A DNA stretch of 64,000 nucleotides from Neoechinorhynchus agilis (taxonomy: Eukaryota > Animalia > Acanthocephala), in assembly GCA_051530055.1 (NCBI GenBank), contig CM121341.1:15726784-15790783 (forward strand), written 5' to 3'. Within the stretch, counting starts at the first letter, position 1. Each line of letters opens with the position of its first letter. Made by a program: the position numbers and the translations under genes. The notes under the pieces were generated by a model that worked only from the letters and a program-made list of their open reading frames with translations, did no database searches and was not told where the DNA came from. This document shows, in pieces, positions 6,401 through 61,813 of this stretch.

Positions 6401-7870
6401 CAAAACCTTTCTTTTTTCCAAACCACCGTCATCCCCTAATCGTTCCTGGTGGAGCGAGATCAAAAATGCCATAGGCCTTCACAGATCTCAGCCTTTCGCC
6501 AATCTGCATAAATGTCAGCTCGAAAGCTGCCATGTGCAATCCCAAATCTTCCACTGACACCAGCGTCGTACGCCCCTGCGACAATCGCAACCATATGACC
6601 TGGGTTACTTATTCACGCGTCTCCACTCTTGGGGTTTTCATACTCCTCAAAAAACTACCGCGTACATCATCCCCTAACGCTCCGATTTTCAACTGGGCCA
6701 TTCGCATCATCATTTCCTTGATCTTTGAGCATCTAGCTCATATCATCAATTCTGGCTTTGAAACGGGGATTTTTCCAGATTGCTTGAAGTCTGCTCGCGT
6801 CATTCCTATTCCTAAGGCGGGGAAACCTGTTTCTCTGACTTCCTTTCGCACTATATCTTTACTCTCACTGTTTTCTAAAATTTTTGAAAAATGTTTCAAA
6901 ACTCGCATCCTCCCCATCTTTTTACAAAACATTTTGTCTAACCAATTCGGCTTCCGACCAGGATTCTGTTGTACCGACGCCCTCTTGTGCATTTACGATT
7001 AGATTCTGCGCAATCTTGACTAGGAACCGTCTTTCGCTTGTCGCCTCATCCAGGTGGACTTTGCCAAGGTTTTTGACTCTGTAGATCACGATCTTCTCGT
7101 TAAGGCCTGCGAGAAATTTGGCTTCTTACCCTGGCAAATAAGCTGGCTCACTTCTTTCCTCGCAAACCGGTCGCAATATTTTCAATGCGGCAATACCTGC
7201 TTAACGAAGCTTCCCATACATTTCGGTGTGCCACAAGGAGCTGTACTATCGCCCTTACTTTTCGATATCTTCCTCAACGACCTTACACCCCTCTCAACGT
7301 CCGCTAAATATTTCCTTTATGCGGACGACCTAGTCATCATAACCCATGCTCCTCCATCACTCTTGCTCAGCCTCACGTCCGCAGAGATTGACAATCTTAA
7401 AAATTTTTGCACAACCCATCAACTCTCAATTAATTTCTCCAAATCATATGAACTTGTTCCGTCGCTTCGAAAACCTAGGACTGATATTCCACCGCTCCCT
7501 TTCGATATCCAACGCGTCACATCGCTTCGCATTCTGGGCCTAATCTTCCAACACAACCTCAAATGGGACATCCACATTAATGGCGTTGTAGCAAAAGCCA
7601 CTGCTAAATTGTATTTTATCAAGCGCTTGCGTTTCCTCGGAGTCAGCCCACGCGATTTAGCACATTTCTATTGGTCCGTCGTGGTCCCTGCAATCTCATA
7701 TGCATACCCAACCTTTTGCAATTTATCCACCCATCAACTGCGCTTGCTTTCCTCCCTAAATAAACGAGCCTGCAAAATTTGCTCCAAAAACCTCCCATTA
7801 ATCGAAGAACACCTTTCCAAATGCGACGACTTGCAGCTCATTACGAATTACAATCTCAATCAAACAACAC
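3500..7870 (+). mobile_element. CR1/L2-group LINE, decayed (ORF1 + APE + RT)
   Basis: ORF1 LFISGIPE...PRLLKVSF; APE YTNIRSI..K.DEL...ITETWL, GDFN, SDH; RT QFGFRPG, DFAKVFDSVDH, GVPQGAVLSPLLF, YADD; frameshifts and stops. Confidence 0.9.
4968..5608 (+). mobile_element. 5'-truncated CRE-type (RLE) non-LTR retrotransposon inserted in the LINE APE domain
   Basis: CRCxxxxDxxGRHGLVC, RHSEIN, RPDG...PW..GK.LLW, GVETYG, QRGNA; flanked by CATTT (4963-4967, 5604-5608); removal restores PGFSSFIVTRDDR. Confidence 0.88.
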
Positions 7871-7996
7871 GAATGCAAAGATATCAGGAGTTATAATCAA
7901 TTTGATCACAGATTACTTCTCCTTGTCTCAGGAGGAATGAGTGGATCGAACTCATCACATTGTGCACTTCTAAGAATGCCTTTTAATTTAATTCCA

Positions 7997-8225
7997 AATG
8001 GCGAATTGTAACACACTCGAGTTTTATTGACGATAACCTTGCGAATTTTCAAGGCCTTAACTTCCTTCTCAAGCATTGTTTGCAAGTTTTTTTATAAAAA
8101 ATGCTTGAAAAGGAGGCTGAGGCCTTGAAAATTCGCAAGATTGATCTCAATAAAACTCGAGTGTGTTACAATTCGCCATTGAGAATGCACATCCACCCGA
8201 AGGAACAATTGGATTGAATTTTAAT
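7997..8225. mobile_element. Inverted pLTR fold-back family F2 (variant hammerhead core) with ~45 nt one-sided tail
   Basis: AATGGCGAATTGTAACACACTCGAG... inverted 7997-8180; CTTGARAAGG..CCTTGAAAATT..AATAAA; tail identical in the inverted copy at 51936. Confidence 0.65.
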
Positions 8226-15827: not shown

Positions 15828-16519
15828 TTATACGAGCTTCTTAGCTTGGAAAAATCCCCTTAGATGCTTCATTTGCCAAAACCCGATAATGAGTAGAACA
15901 CAGAGTTGAGCGATTGACCATCGAAACACTCGTCCGTTGATGGTTTGACTCAATTGTCTAAAGTGCTCTTCACGAGTCTACATTAGAAAATGCTATAATG
16001 TTCAATAGTACTTCGTGCGGTTTACATACTAACCCGCTGATAATTTTGCTCTTTTGCAATCTGCGCTGCTTGATCAATCAGCTGACGCAGTCGTAACTGG
16101 AGCTCAGACAACTTTTCAGCTACGCCGACTTTCTCGTAATCGATAGTATGTTCCCCGATCGCAATGTCAAGATGAACGCGGACAGTCGATCCACCAAACC
16201 AAGCCGAAGAGTTTGTTTTTAAACAAATCACATGTTCGCCAGCAGTGTGAGACGTGAACGTGAATTGCCCAGAAGATGTGTAAAGTTTATTCATCATTTC
16301 CTTGTTGTCCGGGTCACGAACCTGTACGAAAATCCCGAACTTTGTGTCGCCATCTACAAACGTCCTCGACTGAGGATCCGCCATTTGCAAACGGTACTTC
16401 CCTACCACTTGAGTATCTTCGGGAATTTCTTCAATAAAGCATTTCTCGTCTGTCTCACGGATGTCGAAGAAAAGACCGTTGACTAATATTGGAAGGAGCA
16501 GAAGATATGCCGTAAACAT
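15828..16519 (-). CDS. TMED9: p24 alpha family protein (TMED9/TMED4-like), 2 exons
   Basis: Signal peptide, [12 protein letters not shown] domain, [15 protein letters not shown], coiled coil, [10 protein letters not shown]; canonical ~56 nt GT-AG intron. Confidence 0.92.
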
Positions 16520-16933
16520 CTAAAACGAAAGTAGTCAATAAGGTCGAATTTTAATAATTAAATCTTTCGGTGAAATAAACTTAAGCGCTTGAACAACATC
16601 AAGGTTCTTTTAAATTTGGAGCGATGAGACCTATGTAGAAGTTGTGCTTGCCGATCATTTCTGGTAACCGCCGGTCCGTGCTCCACAAACGAAGCCAATC
16701 GAACCTGGGCATTGTAGGCGATACACCAAGAAGGGTGCAATTACCTAAAAAAAATTAAAGGCGAAACAAGCAGGATCCAAATCCTATTGTTGCTGGCTAA
16801 AACGATTGCCAAAAATGATCAGATGAATTATAGGATTTCGAGATTGTCTAACGACGACGACACGATATTTAAAAACAATCCAACCATAAGCTTTATAATA
16901 GACATCATTCGTACAGATATTAAAACGCAGAAA

Positions 16934-17876
16934 CTAACTTCTAGAGCGATTTACTATATCGATAAGTTCACTAAGATCTCGGACATCATTCTCCGATCGT
17001 TTTTCGTTAAAGTGCGTGATCAGTCGATCGGGTCGACAGAGCCAGATAAGACGAAGACACATTGGGCCAAAGAACCGAGTTGAATGCAGTAGATCGTACG
17101 CACCAATGTCGTCTACTCCATTGATCACGCCGAGAATGCGTGACCTATGGTCAAGATATGTGAGAATACACACGGTCGCATACCTATAAAGAATGAGATG
17201 ACGCACAAAATTGATTTGGCATCAAAGAATCTACCCGTACGAATTCCGGATCGTATGGTTCGTATTGGTGACAAGCTGCTTCCAAAATGAACTCGTGTTT
17301 ATTGGCGTTCAATGCATCTTCCAAGAATGGATCGTGGAACATTTCTGGGGGCTGAATCGATCGGTATGGTCGATCAAAGAACAGTTGAATCCATCGCTGG
17401 CGTTGTTCACTAGACGCATGTTCCAAATTTCCGTTCGGTTGCCGGACGACCACAACTCTGTCCTGTAGTAAATTTAAAAAAGGATTGTGTTTAAGCGCTT
17501 TAATTTATAGCGCTAACCCGATCATCAACGTCACTGATATCCACAAATCCATAAGGAATGTCAGAATGGTTCTCCAGTTCGGGATCGGTTTCGATAATTC
17601 CACTAGGACATTTAATTGGATCGAGAACTGGCGGCATTTGAAGAACGGTCTTCCTCACAGTTTCCATGGAAGTTTGAATTGCCTGCTCATTTAAAAAGTA
17701 AGCTAAATATAAAGATCTTTGCGTACCTTTTGATATTGGTCTTGTGTTAGTAAACAGACTTTAGATTTATCAAGACCAGGGCATCGCTGAAACACCCGTT
17801 TAATGTCAAATCCTGTAATTCTGTAGAGGAGCCGCTGTACCGTTGGCATTATGAAAACCTTCTCTATACTTGTCAT
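16934..17876 (-). CDS. MRPS22: Mitochondrial ribosomal protein S22 (3' end unresolved)
   Basis: LQMPPVL, DRVVVVRQPNGNLEHAS..QR.RWIQLFF, CHQYEP.DP.F, YDLLHSTRFFG; three GT-AG introns plus one TA-bounded insert. Confidence 0.85.
17114..17158 (-). other. TA-bounded hairpin intervening sequence in MRPS22 (43 nt removed)
   Basis: Stem CCATAGGTCACGC/GCGTGATCAATGG; removal fixes a stop and frameshift, giving RVYSHIDDIGAYDLL. Confidence 0.8.
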
Positions 17877-17935
17877 CTATGTTTAAAAAAAGGGAAATGC
17901 GATTTTTCCTCGTATCAAAAATTGAAGACTCATAT

Positions 17936-20349
17936 TTATTCCTTTTTCTCATGTTCAGCATTTATTTGCCCTTGTGCCTCAACGTCCTCGATTCGGCGAT
18001 CTCCAACAAGTCCAAACTCATTAACCCGCGTGAAGTCAACTTTATAGATCCACATTTGGTAAAGATAAATAAAAAAGACAATATCGTCCCTGAAGCAACT
18101 AATCCGGTAAAGGATTGGTGTTTTGACAACAAAAGCAAAGATATCATCGACAAAAGTATTCAGTGCTTTATAGGTCATCATTCTCCATGGTAAATGAGCC
18201 ACGGATTTTAGTTTGTAGTTTATGAACAGTTGTGGGGTCATCATGATGAACCCGAACGTTAAAAGAAATCCGTAGATCATTGATAGAAGCCAACTGTACC
18301 ATCCTCGGTGTTCGTTGTATATCAAAGAGTAGATGGCATAGCTGCACACTAAAGGGAATAGTACCACTGACAGGTATTTGAACGCCGTCTGAAATTGAAG
18401 AGTGGAAAATTGGAGATTATAAGTAGACAAAGGAGTCTAACCTTGTCGTATTCACTTGTGGACGAATCAACGTAAGACGATGTGAAACTCACTTTAACGG
18501 AATACGGAAACAACCCCTGTCTTCGATCAACCTAAAAGAAAAAACCTCAATATGCAGAAACGACAATGCTGTAAAAATTAAAGTAGTTCTATTGAATCCG
18601 ATTGTTTTCGGACGCACAGTATTGTGCGCATTCTTTACCCAAATGTTGTTTGTAAGTTAACAATCGGATTCAATGAAACTACTTTAATTTTTAATCTCCA
18701 AACATAAACAGTGGCACACCTTCTTTTTACGCATGGGATTACGGAAGAAGCTAATTTTTGTCAAATTTAACGTTTACCTTCACGTTCAAGCACTTTGGCA
18801 CTTTCCAAATTTCCAAAAGGAATCCAAGAAACGCACTGATTCTAATCCCGAAATTGCTTTGATTATCGAAAACGTACAGCATCACAATAAGACTCGAGAA
18901 TATATTGAAGAGCATAGATCGTACGGAGAGTCCTTGAAGGTCGGTTTTGTTTCGCCAGAATTGGATATCATTTTTGAATGCAAGGAATTCGAAGAAGGTA
19001 TGTGCTATGGACACAATTACAGTGAGGACCAAAATGTAGATATTAGTTTCAAGAAGACTTTGCTTAATGAGATCTTGTCCGTCTAAGTCGACATCTTCAC
19101 CACCGGCGGATAATACTGAAGACCACATGGGTTTCACTTCCTGACTTAAGTAAAGTTGAAGTTTCCATAGGCGTAATGGAGCGAAGATGAGGTTCAGATC
19201 GACTTCCTTTACGGTTTCGTTAAGCTCAAAATACTCGGAGTTCAGGTTCCAGTAATCGTTTAGGTCATGCGCAGATAATCTATGGTCTCTAAACAAAGAA
19301 GTTGATTCGGAATTTAAGGGACTATTTACCAGCAGAGCACGTTTATCTACGAACCCAACCTTTAAGAAGGTATAAAACTAAAAATTGTTTGTTTTCTGCG
19401 CTTAAAAATAGTCTGCTGATTTTGTCAAATAAAAACGGATGCTTTTGCATGTTCTGTTGATTTTGTTAAACTAACAAGCAGGAAATTAGAAAGTGACTAC
19501 TGTCGGTTTGTGTCGTTTACAGAATCTTCTAATATCTACCTTGTCCCACATAAGTCCGCGGCGATTCTAGACTTGGGTGGAAGGCACCAGGAACTAATTA
19601 ATCTTTCTCGAATCTACAAAAACGTCCATTGAAATTATCCACACATGACATAGATAAACCATGGGAAAATAGGTTGTTTTCGACGCTAGTTTAACGTATC
19701 TATCGAATGGAGGAGCTAGTTTTGAAGCGGACCATTGTGTTTGATCGTCAATTATGTTGATGGTCATGTTTGGATGAAAAAACGAGAGTATCTCAACAAC
19801 TTGTAGTTCGGCTTTACGTTGGTATTCTTGATCATGATCGGTTTGTCCAGTTAAAAGGTTCTTTGTTTGATGATAGGACCTGCGTCGATATTTGTTTAGC
19901 TGTTTCGTCTGACAGAAGGCACTTTGTCGATCAAACGGGTTTCCGGATTCAGTGAAACAAGCGTGAACGTAAAAAGATCCATTGTTTTGAACATGTTCAC
20001 TGAGTTTGACTTTTCCGGATTTCTTAAAAGAGCCGTCTTTCCCCTGTGAATAATCAGCGTACCTGATTTGCCTTTGTATCCAAAAAGGCTCGATCCCCGG
20101 CGCTAGTGTTTCTTCGTCACTTACAAATACAAACATATCGAATACTGTGCGTCGAGGAACGTATAAATTCTGAAGAAGATTGCTTCCCGCGTCGGACGGT
20201 TGAACAATTCGGTCCGGTTGGGGCCTGAACATCCTCATCACAAGATACGTTATGGCCAACTGAATGGCAATACGACGTATCTTGTCGAAAAGAGAATCTC
20301 TGGACTCGGCTCGTTGCGGCGCGCCATTCGTCGTGGGTGGCTCACTCAT
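17936..20349 (-). CDS. CLPTM1: Cleft lip and palate transmembrane protein 1 (lipid scramblase family)
   Basis: HPNMTINIIDD, NDYWNL, FEFLAFKNDIQFW, FIMMTPQLFINYKLKSVAHLPWR, YQMWIYKVD. Confidence 0.95.
19261..19652 (-). other. TA-bounded intervening sequence with 16-bp terminal stem in CLPTM1 (390 nt removed)
   Basis: TA-T-GTCATGTGTGGATAAT ... ATTATCTGCGCATGAC-C-TA; removal gives YFPMVYLNDYWNL. Confidence 0.85.
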
Positions 20350-28169: not shown

Positions 28170-30430
28170 AAAGCAACGTCGATCACATGGGCGCGTTCGA
28201 CAAAGTTAAAAGTCTAGGGATACGAGCGTATCCATGGTGGACACAGTGTGTGATCAAGAAACGCCGGGGTTTACGTATTTCGAATACTTACTTTCAAAAA
28301 GATCCAAGACACCTGCGCACATACTCGAGCGGTGGAAGGTCAAGTAAAATCGATTTTATTTTGTATCCCATAGCGAAGTGGGGCGAAGTCTGGAATGTCA
28401 AGACCATATTAGGCGAAGAGTGTGCGATGCAACATAGAGTACTCGTGGCCGACCTCAGGATTAGATTCAAAGGCAAGCGGCAGACACCGAGCATCTCACG
28501 AAAAATCAAGTGATGGAAGCTAAAAGATCCTATCCTCAAAGAAAAGATGAGGATTGTACTCACCCAGAAACTAAGCGAGAACGTGGGCGAAGTAGAAACC
28601 TGGTGGGATGAGACGGCCGAAGTTATCATCCGGGAAGCCAAAATCGTCTTGGGAAGGACGTCGGGGTAACCTCCACCTCCGAACAAAGAGGCATTTTGGT
28701 GGAATCAAACGGTCAAGGACGCCATCAGTCAAAAAAGAGCAGCGAAGAAATATTAGATTTCGATTCTTCAACTAATAATAAAGATGCGTACAAAGACGCA
28801 AAAAGGAAGGCTGCCCGAGAATGCGCCAAAGCAAAGAGGGAAGCCGATCAAGAACTATATGACCAGCTGGAGAGAGATAATGGGAGGAATATTATCTTCA
28901 AGTTGGCCAAAATCCGGGACAAAAGGTCAAGGGACATCGTACGACACAAAATGATCAACGACAGTGTGGGTAGGATGCTCGATCAAAACAACGATATTTT
29001 GAACAGATGGAAGTACTTCGGATCCCTCCTGAACACAGAGAGTAAAAAATTGCCTATTGAATAAATACAGCCGAATATCAATATGGCTAAACCGTATTCA
29101 TACGATGACGTCGCATCGCAGATCAGAAAGATGAAGATTGGTAAGAGTGCCGGTCCAGATAATATCCCGATTAGGTTATGGAAATGTTTGGACGCATTCG
29201 GAGTCAAACTGCTTACTAAACTTTTTCGAAAGATAGATGCAAAGCAAACGATTCCGTCAGCATGGCAAAGAAGCATAATTGTGCCGATTTTTAAGGGTAA
29301 AGGAAATATTCTGCAGTGTAGCAATTATCGTGGCATCAAGCTGATGTCCCACACAATGAATTTGTGGGAGTGAATGGTTGACAATAGGATTAGGGAGGAG
29401 ATCCAAATCAGTGAATACCAACGCGGCTTTATGCCAGGTAGAAGCACAATCGACGCGATCGAAAAATTTAATGAGAAGCATCGCCCGTTGCATAGTGTCT
29501 TCATCGACCTGGAGAAAGCATATGACACCGTGCCCCGAGACCTGATTTGGGCCTGTTTGAGGAAGAGAAACTGTCCAGAGCATTTTGTGATCACAATCAA
29601 AACGATGTATGAAAAGTGTTACACCAGCGTGGAATGTCAAATAGGAAGGACAGATTATTTCCAGGTGTCCATTGGTCTACATCAAGGTTCAGTGCTTAGC
29701 CCATTCTTGTTCGCGACAGTCATCGATGCCCTAGGAAATGCAGAGATGAACGCGCCCTGGACGATATTATTTGCAGATGATCTGCTGCTCACGGCGAAGG
29801 ACTCGGTGACACTCGAGAAAATGTTGGAGAGTTGGCGACAGTGCTTAGAAAGCAACGGCCTGAAAATTAGCAGGAGCAAAACGATATGGGACCAGGCGAA
29901 GTAGGCATGCAGGAAGTTAACGCAGAAAAGAGGAACAACTTCAAATATCTGGGTAGCCTGCTAAGCATGTCCTGTGAACATGCACCAGAGATGGGACAAA
30001 GGGTTCAATACGAGTGGAATAACTGGAAAAGAGTTACGGACATCCTGTGCGATAAACGTCTCCTGAATAAGCTCAAAGGGCGAGTGTACAAAGCAGTGGT
30101 AAGACCTGCAATGGTATACGCAGCGGAGACTTGGGCTACAAAAAAGGAGGACGTACAGAGATTGATTGTGAATGAAATGAGGATGCTGAGATGGTTAGTT
30201 GGAACAGCACGCAGGGATAGTGCAGGAAATGATAGCCAAAAGAAGAATGCGATGGTTCCATCATGCCGAACAACGAGCGGAAGACGATTGGATAAAGAGC
30301 GCCGACGAGGAAGGTCGAAAAAAAGATGGATAGATAGTGTGATGGAGGACCTAAGACGATCGGATGAAGTTTGATTTTTGAGGACAAGCTGGTAAAGCGA
30401 CCTCTCTAGTGTGAGAGAAAGCTATAAGAA
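28170..30430 (+). mobile_element. RTE-clade LINE (APE-RT), decayed
   Basis: NTYFQK, IDFIL, QHRVLVAD, NYRGIKLMSH, FIDLEKAYD, GLHQGSVLSPFLF, LFADD, RGRSKKRWID. Confidence 0.92.
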
Positions 30431-30434
30431 GCGT

Positions 30435-30645
30435 GTGTTCATCATTTACTTTTTTATAGCGAATTATAATAATTGATTTATTTTTATTTGATAATTTTCG
30501 GTCTTCGCGCAAGTCTTCTCCAGTCTATTGTTTGCAAGTGCTTACGACGTCAGATCGTGGCAAACAATAGACTGAAGATGGCTTGCGCGAAGGCCGAAAA
30601 TTATCAAATAAAAATAAATCAACTATTATAATTCGCTATAAAAAG
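30435..30645. mobile_element. Inverted pLTR fold-back family F1 with hammerhead-like core
   Basis: ATAGCGAATTATAATAATTG... inverted; CTGAAGA-N-GGC(C)T..AGGCC-GAAA-ATT..AATAAA. Confidence 0.7.
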
Positions 30646-36837: not shown

Positions 36838-37233
36838 TCATAGGTTTATGTGAATTGAAAGTTAAATTTAGGACTTTAAAGAATGCGTCTCCGTTGTGGA
36901 TTAAATGCATACTATGAAATTAACGAAAAATAATACTTTTTCCCCTATATTTATTTTCGTTCTCGACTGATATCAAGGAAAATTCAAAAAGGCCACACAT
37001 ATAATTTCTACAATCTCATTGAAAGAAATAAAGAATAAAGCCTTGGCAAAGGGTTTATTAAATTTTTTAGCATTTGAGCTTTTCAGATAAAATGCAATAG
37101 TAACTGGAAATTTGGAATCGTCATTTTTTGAAGAAATAATTTTGGTTCGCTAGAGCGAATCCTAAAGATTTGATGAAACCAAATAGACAGTTTTAATTTG
37201 TCCGCAATGGAAAACATTTGAATAATAATAATT

Positions 37234-37391
37234 TAAATCGATGCGTGGCCTATTATGACACGGCTGTTACTTTTTGGGCACACAGCCCACCGACCTGGTT
37301 CTGAGTAGTAATTCAATTACTCTGAACCAGGTCGGTGGGCTGTGTGCCCAAAAAGTAACAGCCGTGTCATAATAGGCCACACATCGATATA
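37234..37391. mobile_element. TA-flanked MITE-like fold-back (family F6), ~70-bp near-perfect arms
   Basis: TA-A-ATCGATG.GTGGCCTATTATGACACGG... / ...CCGTGTCATAATAGGCCAC.CATCGAT-A-TA. Confidence 0.8.
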
Positions 37392-37454
37392 AATTACCGG
37401 CTGGCCAATCTTCACAAAATAATTTAAATGTTTTTTCTGGCAAGCCGCTTCTAT

Positions 37455-38873: not shown

Positions 38874-40749
38874 TCACCTCAAAGTTTTCATGTCGACGAC
38901 ATAGGTGTTCGTATCTGATCCGTCGATCAAGCCGCTCATTGCGTCTTTAATCTGCTTATGAGAAATGGTTTTGAACGGAAATCTGATGAAGTGCTTGTTT
39001 AAGTACTCAAATACTCTACTTGTAAGTGCGGATGAAGATACGCTCGGTACCATAAGGGTTCGCTGTCCTTTGTTTAGATTCCATAGATCAATATTGATTT
39101 CCGCTTTACTTCTGCTAGTTATGATCTTCGCGTATGTGCCGTTCAATTTTAGCAACTCAAAATATTTAGATGGTACATGTTCATTCGTAGGACATGGATC
39201 GATCACTATATCGAACGAATTAGGAGTAAGGTCGTCCAATTTTACAAATTTTATTTTCGCATTATCCTCAGATACTATCTCCGAAAGTAGCATCTTTTTC
39301 GTCTTAAAAATGGCGACCGTTTAAAGAAACGATCGCTCAAACGGCCGCCAAAGGTATTTGAGATTATAAATATTGAAATCGGCAGCTTGCTTAAAAATAC
39401 GGCTAATACACGCACGAGTTCAAATGGATCGGCACCAATCAGTGCAATTTTCTGGTTTTGTTTACTAGATAAACATCTGTCGATTATATTTAGTGCTATT
39501 GCTCCGTTATGAAGTACCGTACTTGCCGCATCTGGTTCAATATTATCCGGAATTATGGTCACGAATGCTTGATTTACGACCATGTGGGTGCTGAACCCAC
39601 CACAAGTTACGGCCCCGTCGTCTTTCTTAAAAAGATAATTGTAACATTGAACCGACCCTTCCTCACAATGACCGTTGAATCCCTGCCGGCAGTTTTCACA
39701 TTGTCCACATGAGTCCACTAGGGGACCGAGGGCAAGTTTTCTCTGTGGTTTAGATCGATAAATTTGGGAAGGGATTTTTGTTTAATCGAATAAGGGCAAT
39801 TTTTAATTGTTTTTATATGGCGGAAAAATTAATAGAATTTATTGATTCCGATATTTCAGCACAATATTGTGCCTTTATCAAGGTTTCTTGCACATTTTGA
39901 AATATGTGAGCTACAAACAACCTTGATAAATGCACAAGATTGTGCCGAAATATCGGAATCAATAAATTCTTTTAAATTTTCCGCCATATAATAACATGAA
40001 TAGTTCAATCTTCAAACAATTTTTAATTATTTTTTGTGATAAAGTATAGATGGAAAATGGGGCTTAGTGATTGTTTTTGGAGCCGCTTAGAACTACAAAG
40101 GTATAATCGATTTTTTCCTTTAATGGAATTAATGCACTTTTTGACTGTTTTTTATGGTTGAGAGCATTTAAAGGAGAAGCGCTTGGACCGAGTTTAGTTT
40201 TCTAAACCATTTAGATCGAAAAGTAATGGAATGGGACTAACGCGTTTTCTGAACTATTTTTAGTCCCGAAAAACTTTTAGGTGAACCATGACCGAGTACC
40301 AGTTTTATCAGTCCTTTCAGCGGTTTAGATATAGTGGAAGTGATGCATTTTTAGATTCCGAGGATTTGAACGAACCCAATTGAAGATTCCACGTGGAGAA
40401 ATCTTGCTTTATGGCAACATAATCCCCTTGTTGAAGTTCAGTGACCGTTTCACCGACCTGATACACAACCCCAGTTACCTGGTGACCTGGCACTACAGGT
40501 AATTTCATTTCTGACGAGGTACAGTCAACAAACACTTGCTGATCACATTGGCAAATGCAGCAGTATAGAACTTCTACAAGCACATCATCTTTAAGTAGGG
40601 GTCTTCGACGAATGTTGAATTGTTCAATTCGACCATTACGAGACTTTATCCCGCAAGCTTTGACTGTCATACCAGTAGAAGGCCTTATTAGGTACAAATA
40701 AGTGTTAGAAAGAAGGTTGATGCACTTACCCTGCGATCGGTTCGTACAT
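38874..40749 (-). CDS. Zn-dependent medium-chain alcohol dehydrogenase, CAD/YahK-like, with degenerate active site
   Basis: DVLVEVLYC, PVVPGHQVTGVV.QVG, VDSCGQCENCRQG..GHC, T.GGFS..MVV; one GT-AG intron and two non-canonical inserts. Confidence 0.85.
39305..39356 (-). other. TA-bounded hairpin intervening sequence CAD-2 (50 nt removed)
   Basis: TA-CCTT-TGGCGGCCGTTT..AAACGGTCGCCA-TTTT-TA; removal fixes the frameshift, giving IFIISNKTKKMLL. Confidence 0.8.
39728..40411 (-). other. TA...TC-bounded intervening sequence CAD-1 (682 nt removed)
   Basis: TA-AA-GCAAGATTTCTC..GTGG / CCAC..GAGAAAACTTGC-CC-TC; removal gives GDYVAIGPLVDSC. Confidence 0.75.
39814..40019. mobile_element. Inverted pLTR fold-back family F4, nested in the CAD-1 insert
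   Basis: ~70-bp arms; CTTGATAAA-(G)GCACAA..TTGTGCC-GAAA-TATC..AATAAA; tail shared with solo arms. Confidence 0.7.
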
Positions 40750-41217: not shown

Positions 41218-41400
41218 ATAGCGAATTATAATAATTGATTTTTTTTGTTTGATAATTTTCGGCCTTCGCGTAGACTTTAGTCTATTGCTTGCAAGTTGTT
41301 TCAAACAATAGGCTAAAGAAGGTACACGCGAAGGCCGAAAATTATCAAATAAAAATAAATCAATTATTATAATTCGCTATAAAAAGTAAATGATGAACAT
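41218..41400. mobile_element. Family F1 fold-back copy
   Basis: Same arms as 30435; tail AAAAAGTAAATGATGAAC on the right. Confidence 0.75.
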
Positions 41401-42311: not shown

Positions 42312-42537
42312 AAAAATGTCGATATGTGAGGTACCGGGGTATATGATTAGGATTATTGTTTAAGTTATCACCCGGTAAATAATTTTGTATCACAGAGGTT
42401 TCAACCCTCGTCGAGTTCCTCATCACCTTGTTAGTCTTCTATTATTAACTAACAAACTGATGATGAACCCGACGAGGTTCGAAACCTCTGTGATACAAAA
42501 TTATTTTACCGGGTGTAGACCCAAACAATAATCCTAA
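42312..42537. mobile_element. Family F3 fold-back copy (a fragment also lies at ~41530-41607)
   Basis: CTGATGATGAACCCGACGAGGTTCGAAAC at ~42457-42485 and an inverted copy at ~42398-42430. Confidence 0.75.
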
Positions 42538-43349
42538 AACCGAAAAGTTCGAACAGTCAAAGTTTACCAGAAAAAGCCTATAAGTTTGACATAAGGAAAT
42601 ATATTCAGCACATTTGTTTGTTACAACTTCCGGCATTCTCCAGGATTTTATGAAACAGATATTTCAGATCAATTTTTCACCGTTAGTGTTTGAAATCTGT
42701 CAATTTGCAGTCTAATTTAAGATGTTATACTGTTTCCGTTCAAAGAGTCTTGTGAACCGATAATATTTTAATATCTTTATACTGCCCCAAAACCTCATTT
42801 CTGACTGCTTTGGCTAAAATTAAACGCAAAAAAGTTAGTTTCGAATCTCAGTTTATGAACTTCGTGGAAACTTGGCGAGACCGCCTGAATGTCTTTTGTC
42901 AAACCTGAGATTTTCTTAGAATAAACATCGCAGTCGTGCTGCTCAGTTGTAGAATTTTCGTATCGAACCTCTTGCTCGTGCACTTGTTGAGAACGCACGT
43001 ATTCGTCAGCGAATTGATTGTAAGAGACGCGTGCTCTGTGTGCGAAATGTTGGGTTCGGAACATGAAAATCCACCCTTCCACATAAAGTGACCATTTCAA
43101 AAATTTCGGAATGGTTCTGTTAAAAATCACACATAAATCGTGCTACTTTCAAAGACAATGAACTTTTCCAAGGCGGTTTAGTTTCTAATCGTTTTCAGTG
43201 CGCAAAATGAGCGGTTTTGTACAACTACTACACGTCGAAATTTGTATTGAAAGTATTGAGTTTTCTCGCACACACTCATTGGATTCGGGTGTTTCTTCAG
43301 AATAATCTAATTGCTTGTTTATGGCGTAAAAATTCAAGGAAGTTATTAA

Positions 43350-43453
43350 ACCCGATATTCGGGAGGCACAAAAATTGTGTAAAAATATCGGATTTAATAA
43401 ATTCCTTTAATTTTTACGCCACAAACAAGCATGAGTAGTTCAATCTTCAAACA
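43350..43453 (+). mobile_element. Degenerate solo F4 arm plus tail (others at ~43975-44055 and ~52645-52695)
   Basis: AATATCGGA..AATAAATTC..TAATTTT..GCCA...CATGA..AGTTCAATCTTCAAACAA. Confidence 0.6.
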
Positions 43454-47060: not shown

Positions 47061-47621
47061 AAAACCGGCGCGAATTTCAACCGAGCTTATTCCTTTTTCA
47101 ATCAAAAGTTGTGCCAGAATTGCTGCGAATGTTCATGAAAAATGGTCCGTAAATTGTACATTAGTAAATATGAGAAATCAGATTGTAAATTTGGCAAGGT
47201 TTCATGGCACTGATTATCGATCCACCAAAGACAGGAAATTAGACACTGAAGTGCAAAATGCAATTACGTTAAGATCTGAACTAAATTATCAGTTCATTGG
47301 TTTTAATTTCGATCATTGATATGCGTAAAACTTGGGCTGTTTGATGTCATCTCCTCTCAACGTTCTGTTAAAATGCCGAAACAAATGATGAAAAATGTAT
47401 GAAGCTTGAGAATGAACCATAATCTCGTTTTACGACTGCCATTGGAATAAAACGGATTGAATAAAAGCAACTAGAATCCATTAAAATCATCAAGTTTCAA
47501 AACGAAAAGTATAAACGGTTGAATGTATAAGATTGATGACTTATATCCGTTTGATTTTAAACAAGACGATTAATTTTGATAATGAACAATAGCATTCAAT
47601 GTAAAATACTAATCGAACTAT

Positions 47622-47795
47622 TTTTTATAGCGAATTATAATAATTGATGGATTTATTTGATAATTTTCGGCCTTCGCGTAGGCCTTCTTCAATCTAACAT
47701 ACAATAGACTGAAGAAGGCTTACTCGGAGGCCGAAAATTATCAAATAAAAATAAATCAATTATTATAATTCGCTATAAAAAAGTAAGTGATGAAA
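47622..47795. mobile_element. Family F1 fold-back copy
   Basis: CTGAAGAAGGCTTACTCGGAGGCCGAAAATT; arms match the other F1 copies. Confidence 0.75.
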
Positions 47796-51935: not shown

Positions 51936-52175
51936 ATTGAAATTCTATCCAATTGTTCCTTCGAGTGGATGTGCATTCTCAATGGCGAATTGTAACACAC
52001 TCGAGATTTATTGAACTCTTCATTGCAAATTTTCAAGGCCTTAGTCTCCTTCTCAAGCGTACCAACTTAGGTACCCCCACCACATCCATTTGTAGATGCT
52101 TGAGAAGGAGGCTGAGGCCTTGAAAATTCCCAATGAAGCGTTCAATAAATCTCGAGTGTGTTACAATTCGCCATT
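51936..52175. mobile_element. Family F2 fold-back copy, opposite orientation to 7997
   Basis: Same arms and tail. Confidence 0.7.
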
Positions 52176-52238
52176 TATGATGATTGAAATGCTTATTTCT
52201 TATAATTTAAAATATCATCATTAAATTTTTGTTTATAC

Positions 52239-54879: not shown

Positions 54880-56990
54880 AGCTTATGTAGAGCGATGAGA
54901 AATGTCGCTTAGTGACGAATGATAATAATTGCATAGTAAAAAGAATTTAGTTTTTTTTGCATTAAAAATACGGATATTAAGAGCTGAAAGTTTAAATCTC
55001 TTGTTTAGAAGAACATTGCTTTCGAAATCCCAAAAAATCAAATCATGCCCGCAAGTTCGGAAAAGAGCGAATTGGGAAGTAACTGTCGGTTTAATCGTAC
55101 ACGACTTATTCCAGCAGCAAAAGTCCAAGTAGGAAGAGGTAGAATTGGCGGTGAAAGTAGAGTGAGGTCGCAAAATAATTGAATGCGATGCGGTAGCTCG
55201 GGTGATGGCTTTGGTCCATTTATGCGAAGGGTCGTTGAAATCTCCGAAAAGCATATCTACCCCAGATTCCAGGATATTTCTTAAGATAAAGTTGTTATGT
55301 GCCAGGTATATTTTCCTTGGGCGTACGTAGACGTTACCGATTAAAAATTTCCTACCGTCAACGAAAATAGAAAAAATAATATATGAGAGGTCAGTTGTTG
55401 CGTGTTCGGAAATTCGTACGGGATGAAGGGAGTGCCTGATCATCTATAGAAGTCCTTGCGAGTGGTTAGGAAGAGGCATTGTGATGAAAAACGAGAATTC
55501 TCCTGCTATATCCTTGAAATTGCTGGGAAGGTGTCCAGCGTTTGATATAGACTTCGTCTCTTGGATTAAGATAATGTCGCTCCTCGCCAGTTCATGGTAT
55601 AGTCTGGGAAGGCCTATTCGCCCGCCTGAATTCCACTGCACCAATCTCATGCCTTTTGCTTACCTTTCCTGATGTTGATTGTTCGGCTATTATGGCTCTG
55701 ACGTACTCTTCGTTGTCGTCAATCTCGATATCGGTTGCCGAGGAATTGAAGTCCGAAGTTGTCCGAAGTGGCCTCCGCACTCGCTTTTGAGGCACATGTG
55801 AACCGGTGGCCATGGTCTTGTCAAATTGATGTCATTAACGAATCAAAATGTTTAATAAGCCGCTGCTCAAGATGCTGCATGGCGGTGTTAATTCTCAGAT
55901 CCACTATCTTCAATATCCTGGCACCGAATTGCTCGAGTTTGTTATCCAGATCATTGGGGGAAATTTCCGTAACGTCTTCAAACGACAACAACCCCACCGG
56001 TGCTTCTTTCCTAGGCAACGAAGGTACTTTTGAATGACTCGATGATGTGTGATTGTTCCACGCAGTCCCCTGATTGACAATATCCATTTCCTTCCGTTGA
56101 GCCCATAACACGTACTTTTTGAATTCGGAGCAGGATTTAGCAAAAGCACGGTGGCCCGTTTGACCGCAGTTGGCGCATCCACGAATTGTTTTGGGACAGT
56201 TTTCATTGCAATGTTCCTCTGCACAGAAGGGGCAAATATTTCGCTTCATAGGGCATTTCTGCGCCCAGTGACCCAATTTCTGGCAGCGATTGCACCTTGG
56301 ATAGTGATAATCATCATAGTTAGAAATGTCATTGGCGATGAACTTAATTTCCGTAGCTTGGAAGAAGCACCGTCTTGATGTTAGTTGATCCCTAACGTCC
56401 ACTGCCGCTTTAGCGACAGAACGCGGGATAAGTGCTCCTGATTTTCTTGATTTTAGTAAGAACAAAATCCTACATCCATATTTTCGCTCGAAATCCTTTC
56501 GATCTTCGGAATCAATGTGGTGATAGACCCGACACTAGGAAGGTGGATTCGTAAGTGCCCACGGTGACAGATATTCCACTTTTATCGCAGTGTTTGTCAA
56601 CGAAATCCGCGAACTGTTTTACGTAGTTGTTACCGACGAAATGAATTTTGATTTTGCCGGCGAAATATGAGATGGACTTTATTCGTTCTCGGTCGTCTTT
56701 AATCGTTCTGAGCCAAGGAGTTATGAGTCTTTGATGCATTATTTCTCTGGACAAGATTGGGTTTGATATTAGAATGACCGTGTGAGGCCATCTTTTTGTG
56801 GGTCGATCTATATATTTGGGGTTGTCTTGATCGTTTGAGAGAGTTTTCGTTCCCTCAGTCGAAGATAAGTCATGAGTATTGGGTGGCCATATGTCACCCT
56901 CCTCCGCAACAACAGGTTGCGAAAACATTGATGGTTGTTGCGTACACATGTCAACGCTGAAAATCGACCTCTGATATAATTTTTGATATT
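54880..56990 (-). mobile_element. I/Jockey-group LINE: ORF1 with three zinc knuckles plus APE, truncated
   Basis: RCNRCQKLGHWAQKC, CPFCAEEH, CANCGQTGH; APE LVQWN, ILIQET, GNVYV, GDFN, YLDF. Confidence 0.85.
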
Positions 56991-59521: not shown

Positions 59522-61813
59522 TTAATCCGGCTTTTCCCTTTCGACTTTTGGTTCACATTCCACATCGCATCTCATTCTCTTAGACATTTTACGATATCCG
59601 CTAACTTTTGATTTGGTTAAATGAACATGATCCGAATAATCCGAATCGGAATCCGCTACACTGTCTTCTTGTGGTAACTGATCGTTCGATTCCGAGAGAA
59701 AATGCGATATATCGGCACAAGGACTCACTGAACCGGTCTTTCCAAGTTGTGTTGCGTACTCATGGAATAAAGGAGGCAGAATTGAGTGCAATCGCTCGAT
59801 CTGTTCATCACTTGCATTCCCTTCCCGGAAAGCGTTTCCATGTCCCATTTTGGACATCAATTCAGATTCTCCAAATATTTCGGCTTTGTTGGTCGAGTAG
59901 AAAGTATAGTGGAAGATAGTATTGTTTGCAATGTAGTTGACTTGGGATCCACTAGGAAAAAATATACAAGTGACGGGGAGAGTCGTTCCGTCAACTTCGG
60001 TCACTTCTGTGTATTTAGAAGCGTTATTTTCACGAAGTTCACTCCTTGATGCCACCGAAATCAATATGTTTTTTATAAAGTTCCGTTTAGTTTCGATCAT
60101 GGCGTTTATGACAGAAGGACGGCGAAGAAGAGCCACGAGGTGGGTAAGAGGCGATTCGAAGGATTTCCGAGTAATATCCTGAACGTTGCTCCAAACGCAC
60201 TACTTTTTCGAGTAGCGCTCGTTTAAACTTGGCGAATCTTTTTCTCGCCATATATACATTGAAAAAGAATTATAAAAAAGAAAACTTTGTAGATATTGGC
60301 TATATGTTTTTTATCTTTCCTCGCAATAAACACTAATACTTTAGAATTGAACAATTTATTTACTTAAGATGAAAGAGTGTTTCCATGTACTTCGATCCGC
60401 ATTCAAAATATCTTGGAACCTACCAATATTTGCGAATCGGACAACATTCCCTAGGCCCGAGGAAAATGCCTTTCATGGAACGCGAGCTACGAGGAAAGGT
60501 CCAGGATCAATGGCGACAGCACCGGAGCAGAAGAAATTTCTGAAATACCGAGAGCTGCAGTTTTCAACTTTGCCCCCTTTGAACCGGAGACTAACGATGC
60601 TGGAGAGCGTAATGGGATTATCGCAAAGGGCCTCTTGTGGCAGCTTTCTTCAGCCACCTATATTAAAAATCAGGCGAGCTAATGCCACCGACGTAAGGGA
60701 ATGACAGCGGCGTTGATTTGATTTTTTATTCAATAAAATTTTCACATCGACGCAAAAAACTGGTGATTCTTCTTCCTGCACTTATTCCGACTCGATCTGG
60801 AAAATGAACATGTCAACTTAAAACATATAGGATAATTATCTTCGACGGGAAAAAGAGACCTTTTTTTGGTTTTGTCGGACAATTCCGATATTTCGCAAGT
60901 TTGTTGCTTCAGGACGAAATATCGGTTCTTAAATTAGTGACTTGAATCCCCGAAGTGACAAAACTAAGAAAGTTAACGAAATATTTGTTGTGATTATAAA
61001 ACAATCTACATGGAGGCAAATGGATTTCTACGGCAATTAACCACCCATTTGGCGTTCCGTCTGTCTTAGTTTTTCTAACTGAGACGAAATTTTCTTGCAC
61101 TCTTCGGCGGCATTGGAAGGATACCCATTCCACCGGATAACTTTGTGCTCCTTAGCGATCATTTGCATCGCTAACAACACATTGATGGCATCGTAAACTC
61201 GACGCCGGATGTTTTTATGGTCATAAAAGAGTTCATCAGCAGAGAGATTCGGTTGATTCCGCCTGGATCCATGATAACAAGCGGAAGCATGAGAAGCCGT
61301 GACAGCAGCAGCCGCGGCGATTTCCGCGCAATACTCTTGGACGATCTCGTCAGCTACTTCATTGTAGGTCGTAACGACTTTCTCTTTTACTTTTTGGCAA
61401 ACCTTCATGCTGAAATGACGAAGACCGCGGGTTTTATCTCGGTTTTGAGTCTGACTACCTTGTGTGCTGTATTGGTTGTAGACCGCAGAAGCCTGAAGAC
61501 CGGCTAACCGAGAATATGCACTCGAAGTTGGTTTAATTTGATTGGATGAAACGAGTCCGGATTCGCGGACTTCCAAGCCCGTCTGTTGCTCCTCGGCAAG
61601 CAATCTTCTACTACGAAATCGGGCATTTCCAGGAGGTTGTCCTAGACTTGCAGTACTGATTCGGTCACCCGATGGCGTACAAATATGCACAATCTTAGGT
61701 TTTATCGGATTCGGACGAGGACGTAAAGTAGGTAACACAATCCTGGGAACGTCCGGACTGTCGAAATTTGTTGAATGCCGGTTCGAAGGATTTCGACTGC
61801 TCCGCATGTTCAA
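59522..61813 (-). CDS. TFDP1: Transcription factor DP (E2F dimerisation partner), split by a 960-nt non-canonical insert
   Basis: GLRHFSMKVCQKVKEK..TTYNEVADE, KNIRRRVYDAINVLLAM, then the DP C-terminal domain (LP...; E....MG.G...REG....I.....ILP) in 59522-60106. Confidence 0.9.
60107..61068 (-). other. TA-bounded intervening sequence in TFDP (960 nt removed)
   Basis: TA-A-GACAG-ACGG ... CCGT-CCTT-CTGTC-A-TA; removal gives ECKKISSQLEKLNAMIETK. Confidence 0.8.
60380..60700 (+). mobile_element. Decayed CRE-type RLE fragment nested in the TFDP insert
   Basis: NILEPTNIC..., RGKCLSW, EQKKFLKYREL, NFAPFEPET. Confidence 0.6.

Follow-up and report, generated by a model that had tools for sequence, protein, structure and literature searches.

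The window analyzed here is a stretch of 64,000 nucleotides from the acanthocephalan Neoechinorhynchus agilis (GCA_051530055.1, chromosome CM121341.1, positions 15,726,784 to 15,790,783), a species with a genome of 46.2 Mb. On its minus strand, at approximately 15.74 Mb of the chromosome, lies the gene for the mitochondrial ribosomal protein mS22 (MRPS22; Pfam PF10245, E = 1e-63), and within the fourth exon of this gene sits an insert of 43 nt that folds into a hairpin and shifts the reading frame. The sole detectable mS22 gene in the reference is broken by what amounts to a 41-bp palindrome plus a duplicated TA, and the ancestral sequence is exactly recoverable. Judging from the sequence, the insert is most likely an ordinary disruptive allele, whether null or hypomorphic, and not a programmed element.

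Once the 43 nt are left out, the gene encodes a product of 283 aa that scores 215.8 bits against PF10245 (cut-off 25), spans profile positions 2–241 of 243, and matches the mS22 chains of mouse, pig, and human with E values of ~1e-32 to 1e-35. The model has five exons, separated by four introns of 44, 55, 51, and 48 nt that are all GT–AG (Table 1). The last exon is probable; its NPIIHLIIF fits the family motif [ND]PxxxLxx[FY]. At the other end, the model starts (17849–17876) some 40–70 residues later than its homologues, with no obvious mitochondrial presequence; an additional 5′ exon would not fit, because the stop codon of the neighboring gene CLPTM1 lies only 59 nt upstream. Introns 2 (17463–17517) and 3 (17184–17234) each contain a hairpin of their own (z = −2.0 and −3.0, respectively), and the stem in intron 2, GUUAGCGCU/AGCGCUUAAAC, takes in the 5′ splice site itself. 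Hairpins as a general trait of N. agilis introns were considered and rejected: folds with z ≤ −2 occur in two of eight introns, both of them in MRPS22, and the other six have no significant fold.

A palindromic insert in exon 4

Read along the minus strand, positions 17158..17114 (45 bases) are TA-TCTTGA-CCATAGGTCACGC-ATTCTCG-GCGTGATCAATGG-AG-TA. The two arms pair into a 13-bp stem that closes a 7-nt loop and contains a single A·A mismatch and a single G·U pair. Folded alone, the 43-nt insert reaches −17.2 kcal/mol (z = −3.86, equaled by none of 200 shuffles); folded with its flanks (66 nt), it gives z = −2.09. Of 20,000 shuffled versions of the insert, 23 contained a stem of 13 bp or longer with no more than two mismatches, as did 62 of 20,000 random 45-mers drawn from the window. 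Because fold and stem are so much scarcer in shuffled and random sequence, we regard the palindrome as real and not as a product of chance.

A direct repeat of TA borders the insert, in the arrangement CA[TA]TCTT...GGAG[TA]GAC. Given this repeat, the insert can just as well be counted as 41 nt with a TA duplication, and excising 17158..17116 or 17157..17115 gives an identical result. The inverted repeat is subterminal, leaving six and four bases unpaired at the ends of the 43-nt insert (six and two outside the repeat for the 41-bp form). The 3′ arm region of the insert (17116–17130) is, moreover, the reverse complement of 17014–17028 on the minus strand, in the same exon and ~90 nt downstream; the match is exact over 9 nt (GCGTGATCA) and holds at 12 of 15 positions overall, with a chance expectation of ~0.08. 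Such a match may be a hint that the insert arose by templated, fold-back repair synthesis. The 64-kb window holds no second copy of it, only 9–11-mers at chance level, and Rfam returned nothing at the gathering threshold in the window and nothing at E ≤ 1 around the insert.

Read without editing, the frame continues as ...VYSHIS and ends at TGA; there is no other stop or frameshift in the gene. A stop two codons after the take-off point, followed by a stable hairpin, is an arrangement that recalls translational bypass, in which ribosomes would skip the 43 nt much as happens in phage T4 gene 60. However, the candidate take-off codon (AUA) and landing codon (GUA) do not match, a difference from gene 60, and MRPS22 is a nuclear, cytosolically translated animal gene. 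We know of no precedent for bypass in such a gene, and an explanation of this type seems exceedingly improbable.

The TA boundaries also invite comparison with the TA-bounded internal eliminated sequences (IESs) of Paramecium, which share with the insert their TA ends, a length of a few tens of bases, a position within a coding exon, and an exact excision that leaves one TA. By analogy, the insert would be cut from the DNA of somatic or expressed nuclei between its two TAs, and the TA/TA boundaries would permit exact restoration of the frame. The size range of short Paramecium IESs includes that of the insert, and the somatic tissue of acanthocephalans has a fixed set of large nuclei. Yet the ends of the insert, TATCTTGA and TACTCCAT, do not fit the IES/Tc1 consensus TAYAGYNR; the host is no ciliate; the case is a single one in 64 kb; and a literature search for metazoan exon-interrupting eliminated sequences gave ciliate systems only. 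To our knowledge, no programmed elimination has been described in Syndermata, and we consider excision at the DNA level very improbable here.

Exact removal and the splice-site alternatives

Removal of 17156..17114 yields ...VCDRVYSHI/DDIGAYDLLHSTRFFG, with a nucleotide junction of ...TCTCACATA/GACGACATT... and a junction peptide of ...VYSHIDDIGAYDLL...; the ancestral site is TCT CAC ATA GAC GAC, and the empty site TCTCACATAGACGACATT. The junction recreates the conserved H-I-D motif, represented in the family by EHID, DHID, NHVD, and similar variants. For comparison, an exhaustive HMMER search gave 459 family hits, of which the best 150 were used, and 44 full-length members were aligned with the model. 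Over the stretch ILEAACHQYEPYDPEFVRVCDRVYSHIDDIGAYDLLHSTRFFGP, with GTAGAT at 17234 as the donor of intron 3, the model has zero gaps against these 44 homologues and against mouse chain 7pnt_R, and none of the 44 has a gap in the segment from ILEAAC to STRFFGP. Only the exact removal of 43 nt, combined with the GTAGAT donor, restores this invariant family spacing.

All in-frame GT/GC–AG and AT–AC intervals at the insert site were enumerated. The GT–AG options change the product by −5 residues (58 nt), −6 residues (61 nt), or +6 residues (a 25-nt intron), the GC–AG options by −7 or −8, and the AT–AC options by −2, −3, or +5. No GT–AG, GC–AG, or AT–AC pair fits the exact excision, whose three equivalent pairs of ends are TC..TA, AT..GT, and TA..AG. 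By PF10245 score, the exact excision, at 215.8 bits, is followed by the exact excision with the donor GTACGG (without the residues VR) at 205.5 bits, the AT–AC option of −2 at 204.1 bits, the +6 option at 197.9 bits, and the −5 option at 195.5 bits. An earlier interpretation made from the letters alone (hereafter, the sequence-only reading) had identified the locus as MRPS22, described the stem with its one mismatch and one G–U pair, claimed that a 43-nt excision restores the exact spacing, and given −5 or +6 residues as the GT–AG alternatives. All four claims are upheld here, with −6 as an additional alternative, and the multiple alignment of orthologues proposed alongside them proves gapless over the segment in all 44.

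Conventional intron classes accommodate the exact excision poorly. Its ends are not those of a U2-type intron (GT/GC...AG), although its length would suit one, at 43 nt beside 44–55 nt for the MRPS22 introns and 45–56 nt for those of neighboring genes. For a U12-type AT–AC intron (the −2 option), the 5′ end ATATCTTG agrees with the box ATATCCTT at six of eight positions; no branch-site box TCCTTAAC occurs 10–15 nt before the 3′ end, where the nearest sequence is GATCAAT; and the product would fall two residues short of the gapless family (204.1 vs. 215.8 bits). Continuation of the downstream frame through the insert (..SRILGVINGV..) was also considered and rejected, since no GT donor of suitable phase can join it to exon 3 and its sequence is unlike the family.

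It is conceivable, if unlikely, that the insert marks a nascent intron. Its AG (GGAG/TA) would pair with a cryptic exonic GT 17 nt upstream (ACC/GTGTGT), and splicing of the 58-nt intron 17173..17116 would yield an in-frame mS22 lacking five residues (RVYSHI replaced by L), making the allele tolerable. This is the sole in-frame GT–AG option with a length like that of the MRPS22 introns (44–55 nt); pyrimidine-poor acceptors are used elsewhere in the gene, for example AAATGAGCAG; and the shortened product still reaches 195.5 bits. Introns born from break repair or insertion (Daphnia-type gain and transposon-derived introns; PMC11282704) offer a parallel, with a short insertion, a short direct repeat, a size like that of host introns, and a usable AG in the insert. 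Unlike in those cases, however, the sole canonical pair here removes five conserved residues, and the exon codons that would become intronic are intact. None of the 44 homologues is gapped in this segment, and the Pfam score falls by 20 bits. The donor GTGTGT, furthermore, is unlike those seen here (GTACGC, GTTAGC, GTAGAT, and GTTAGT), a tight hairpin stands directly upstream of the acceptor, and BRAKER, which predicts GT–AG introns, did not pick the 58-nt interval.

A second RNA-level explanation is a hairpin-type non-canonical (introner-like) intron, in which the 43 nt would be excised exactly from the pre-mRNA, the stem joining the TA-bounded ends. Nothing but exact removal agrees with the family, the gene is essential, single-copy, and undamaged elsewhere, and an annotator restricted to canonical introns would split the gene exactly as GenBank does. 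The introner elements of Amoebophrya have boundary direct repeats of 3–5 nt, inverted repeats of 8–20 nt, and no fixed splice dinucleotides (PMC7789003), a combination of direct repeat, inverted repeat, and size that the insert matches in outline; with these, as with the non-conventional introns of Euglena and the non-canonical introns of Fritillaria, it shares a short boundary repeat, a hairpin-forming inverted repeat, the lack of GT–AG, and the need for exact removal. But the direct repeat here measures 2 nt rather than 3–5 nt, and the 13-bp inverted repeat leaves six and four bases unpaired at the ends of the 43 nt and does not abut the junctions. Those systems comprise thousands of copies proven by RNA-seq, whereas the insert is known from genomic sequence and has one copy in the window. 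All other introns here are canonical, the annotated neighboring genes have products of normal length, and the host belongs to an animal lineage with no such record; a literature search on intron peculiarities of acanthocephalans found none reported for Syndermata. We consider a hairpin intron of this type quite unlikely, and only marginally less so the broader proposition that the 43 nt are a TA-bounded, hairpin non-canonical intron exactly removed from the mS22 transcript or DNA. Taken together, the RNA-level explanations—a newly born or a non-canonical intron—carry a probability between slight and modest.

Table 1. Coordinates of MRPS22, its insert, neighboring genes, and MITE-like elements (miniature inverted-repeat transposable elements) in the window
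Feature	Position	Strand	Remarks
MRPS22 exon 1	17727..17876	−	ATG at 17876, directly after AAACATAG; annotated start identical
MRPS22 intron 1	17726..17683	−	44 nt, GT–AG
MRPS22 exon 2	17518..17682	−	
MRPS22 intron 2	17517..17463	−	55 nt
MRPS22 exon 3	17235..17462	−	donor GTAGAT at 17234 yields family spacing
MRPS22 intron 3	17234..17184	−	51 nt
MRPS22 exon 4, whole	16939..17183	−	insert inside
MRPS22 exon 4, part a	17157..17183	−	VCDRVYSHI
Upstream TA of direct repeat	17157..17158	−	target-site-duplication-like or microhomology
43-nt insert	17114..17156	−	TCTTGACC...GGAGTA; within exon 4; frameshift to ...VYSHIS-TGA
Hairpin 5′ arm	17138..17150	−	CCATAGGTCACGC
Hairpin loop	17131..17137	−	ATTCTCG, 7 nt
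Hairpin 3′ arm	17118..17130	−	GCGTGATCAATGG
Downstream TA of direct repeat	17114..17115	−	included in the 43-nt count as its final two bases
Cryptic GT–AG interval	17116..17173	−	GTGTGT...GGAG; 58 nt, in frame, −5 residues (RVYSHI to L)
MRPS22 exon 4, part b	16939..17113	−	DDIGAYDLLHSTRFFGPMCLRL...NRSR
MRPS22 intron 4	16938..16891	−	48 nt
MRPS22 exon 5, probable	16784..16890	−	..NPIIHLIIFGNRFSQQQ, stop TAG 16786..16784; skipped in GenBank model
CLPTM1, upstream neighbor	17936..20349	−	605 aa annotated; ends 59 nt before MRPS22 ATG
TMED/p24, downstream neighbor	15828..16519	−	211 aa, two exons; 100% identical to N. agilis ACOME3_003732
MITE-like elements	30451–30644, 41218–41380, 47621–47782		
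MITE-like elements	7991–8186, 51974–52182		
MITE-like elements	39808–39996, 43312–43431		
MITE-like elements	1113–1284, 42347–42537		
MITE-like elements	37229–37396; 18572–18693		

State of the gene, copy number, and neighborhood

Consensus residues at conserved columns are kept at 65% upstream and 67% downstream of the insert; among other orthologues, the corresponding means are 79% and 77% and the minima 64% and 53%. By this measure MRPS22 falls among functional orthologues and is fast-evolving but undecayed, with no extra erosion behind the frameshift, and the intact open reading frame (ORF), equally conserved on either side, argues for a recent insertion. GenBank splits the locus (16599–17876) into two "hypothetical proteins": KAL7677496.1 (ACOME3_003734; 110 aa), which reads past the intron-2 donor to a stop, and KAL7677495.1 (ACOME3_003733; 89 aa), which starts at the Met of FFGPMCLRL. 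Exon 3 and part a of exon 4 carry no annotation. The 89-aa model also includes a 193-nt intron (16938..16746) that skips the probable exon 5 and ends in the spacer before the TMED gene.

The BUSCO table published in PMC12256650 (supplementary file 1, sheet BUSCO_Syndermatan) lists the entry 363634at33208, "28S ribosomal protein S22, mitochondrial", as Complete, and not as Duplicated, for the genomes of both N. agilis and another acanthocephalan, P. laevis. The absence of a Duplicated status argues against a second complete mS22 copy and agrees with the single-copy state that the sequence-only reading had supposed. The default exon chainer of BUSCO (not stated for that table) should not need splice signals, and for this reason the Complete status fits the MRPS22 locus with its insert. 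Searched against a collection of 5.8 billion proteins, the repaired mS22 found one distant homologue only and no transcript product from the same species. Eight guessed products—the exact excision with either of two C-termini, the form that keeps the insert, −5, and AT–AC, with or without the VR residues—were looked up exactly, and none is on record; the supplement of the assembly paper makes no mention of mS22. The sequence-only reading had implied that the insert is removed by some special route. Of that interpretation, the identity of the gene, the spacing, the lack of decay (65%/67%), and the single BUSCO copy all stand, but the special route is unsupported: no splice pair fits, the GenBank annotation, for which RNA-seq hints were used, has the gene split, and no tested product is on record.

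The assembly was a MaSuRCA/Flye hybrid of Illumina and Oxford Nanopore Technologies (ONT) R9.4 reads from a pool of ~50 worms plus single females, followed by gap closing, polishing, and purge_dups; BRAKER with RNA-seq hints supplied the annotation. A hybrid build of pooled reads, with later gap closing and polishing, might produce an artefact, such that the 43 nt would be absent from worm DNA at this site or present only in a chimeric read. We regard this as improbable, however, given that both flanks are clean and keep the frame, that the insert is a neat, TA-ended palindrome and not homopolymer noise, and that its central 24 nt have no match in the JGI metagenome or the bacterial and archaeal genome collections. 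Nor does it resemble any adaptor known to us. A shade less probable still is a fresh pseudogene, with mS22 coming from an intact copy that escaped assembly or annotation, or with mS22 in the course of being lost from a gene-poor parasite. Approximately 45% of metazoan BUSCO genes are missing in N. agilis, and GenBank treats the locus as two fragments; yet BUSCO finds one copy only, mS22 is kept in P. laevis, and the ORF shows no further decay. No N. agilis-like mS22 occurs among the best 150 of the 459 family representatives, where the sequence closest to the model, from Daphnia, is 41% identical.

The surrounding genes show nothing comparable. The annotated products of CLPTM1 (605 aa), TMED (211 aa), and TRM10 (217 aa) are of normal length, and no similar break occurs in any of the eight called genes within ~10 kb on either side. 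Eight further introns could be defined here, of which four belong to MRPS22, three to a Paf1-like gene, and one to TMED; all are GT–AG. Since the neighbors are unbroken, the insert looks like a one-off and not a habit of the genome; at the scale of one window and about a dozen genes, hairpin inserts at a rate of approximately one per ten to twenty genes would stay compatible with these data. The single-exon ORF of TRM10 was found on one contig only. A window-wide scan for frame-hopping gaps without GT–AG gave 151 clusters and was too noisy to use.

The window also holds MITE-like elements, nearly perfect palindromes of 120–210 bp that fall into at least five families and have termini such as TATAGCGAATTATAATAATTGAT, AATGGCGAATTGTAACACACTCGAG, and TTAGRATTATTGTTTA. 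All are non-coding, and one lies inside a CLPTM1 intron. Their density is high for a 46-Mb genome, and with so many of them, DNA transposition that generates palindromes is evidently at work in this lineage. The remaining hairpins of the window were considered as relatives of the insert and rejected: they are the cores of long MITE palindromes, unrelated to it, and have no ends in common with it.

Several further features of the neighborhood may be recorded. CLPTM1, MRPS22, and TMED share one strand in a head-to-tail arrangement, separated by 59 and 264 nt, and the ATGs of MRPS22 and TMED directly follow acceptor-like sequences (TTTTTTTAAACATAG/ATG at 17877–17891 and TTTCGTTTTAG/ATG at 16520–16530, minus strand). 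Together, the layout and the acceptor-like sequences suggest a putative operon with spliced-leader trans-splicing. Compared with human DP-2 (1cf7_B), the gene for a DP transcription factor has, at 61229–61348 (minus strand), an Ala-rich insertion of ~25 residues, AEIAAAAAVTASHASACYHGSRRNQPN, in the loop of its winged-helix DNA-binding domain; the insertion keeps the frame, and no splice-site pair accompanies it. Retroelement fragments at 7054–7896 (plus strand), 29374–29904 (plus strand), and 55821–56465 (minus strand) comprise two RVT_1 reverse-transcriptase ORFs and one zinc-knuckle ORF, and therefore represent at least two retrotransposon remnants within 64 kb.

Origin of the insert and its meaning

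The interpretation that we prefer, though with confidence no better than even, is that a young insertion allele, a mini-palindrome flanked by TA, was captured in a reference made from pooled worms. A DNA-level event that targeted or used TA would have created the insert. The source may have been a very short MITE-like element or the heavily deleted remnant of a TA-inserting cut-and-paste transposon; alternatively, the insert may be palindromic filler from break repair at TA microhomology. The insert would be evolutionarily young, and an allele that was segregating or had recently risen would have been written into the consensus of ~50 pooled wild worms and single females, with mS22 supplied by intact alleles or by leaky rescue. 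Because the reference was built from a pool, a young or minority null allele could enter the consensus. In favor of this interpretation are the non-random palindrome, the TA at both ends, the superior fit of exact removal, and the absence of a canonical splice pair.

Comparison with MITEs and internally deleted Tc1/mariner-type insertions is instructive in this regard. Like them, the insert has TA on both sides, contains an internal inverted repeat, and codes for nothing; the surrounding genome abounds in palindromic MITEs, and the reading frame is lost just as it would be in an allele carrying a transposon. A TA target-site duplication of the Tc1/mariner kind is present, although a 2-nt match arises by chance in 1 of 16 cases and repair microhomology gives the same pattern. 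The insert differs in being only 41 bp long, in having ends unlike those of the MITE families in the window, and in having no other copy there, where a MITE would be expected in multiple copies. Its inverted repeat, rather than being terminal, begins six and two bases in from the ends, and is 13 bp long with two mismatches.

A number of observations also weigh against an insertion allele of this kind. A null allele should be rare, as mS22 is single-copy by BUSCO and kept in P. laevis, and a rare allele is unlikely to be found in a consensus. The hairpin arms differ at 2 of 13 positions, so that the insert would not be very young if the palindrome was born perfect; and an aged insert within an ORF that has no other lesion would imply continued selection, and with it removal of the insert. 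The lack of a second copy in the window and the subterminal position of the repeat make membership in a MITE family doubtful. Finally, the length of the insert, 43 nt, adjoins the range of MRPS22 intron sizes (44–55 nt).

If the insert is an ordinary disruptive allele, then the N. agilis reference allele of an essential, single-copy mitoribosome gene is broken, and its two GenBank entries, the "hypothetical proteins" KAL7677496.1 and KAL7677495.1, are meaningless as they stand. Split loci of this sort should not be scored as lost in studies of acanthocephalan gene loss. If, instead, the insert is exactly removed, an animal outside the tunicates would process hairpin, non-GT–AG inserts, and the locus would provide a directly testable example of a palindromic insertion turning into an intron. 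A TA-bounded hairpin intron would be the first in Syndermata and among very few in animals, and it may be one of many that cause canonical-only annotation to split genes in this 46-Mb genome.

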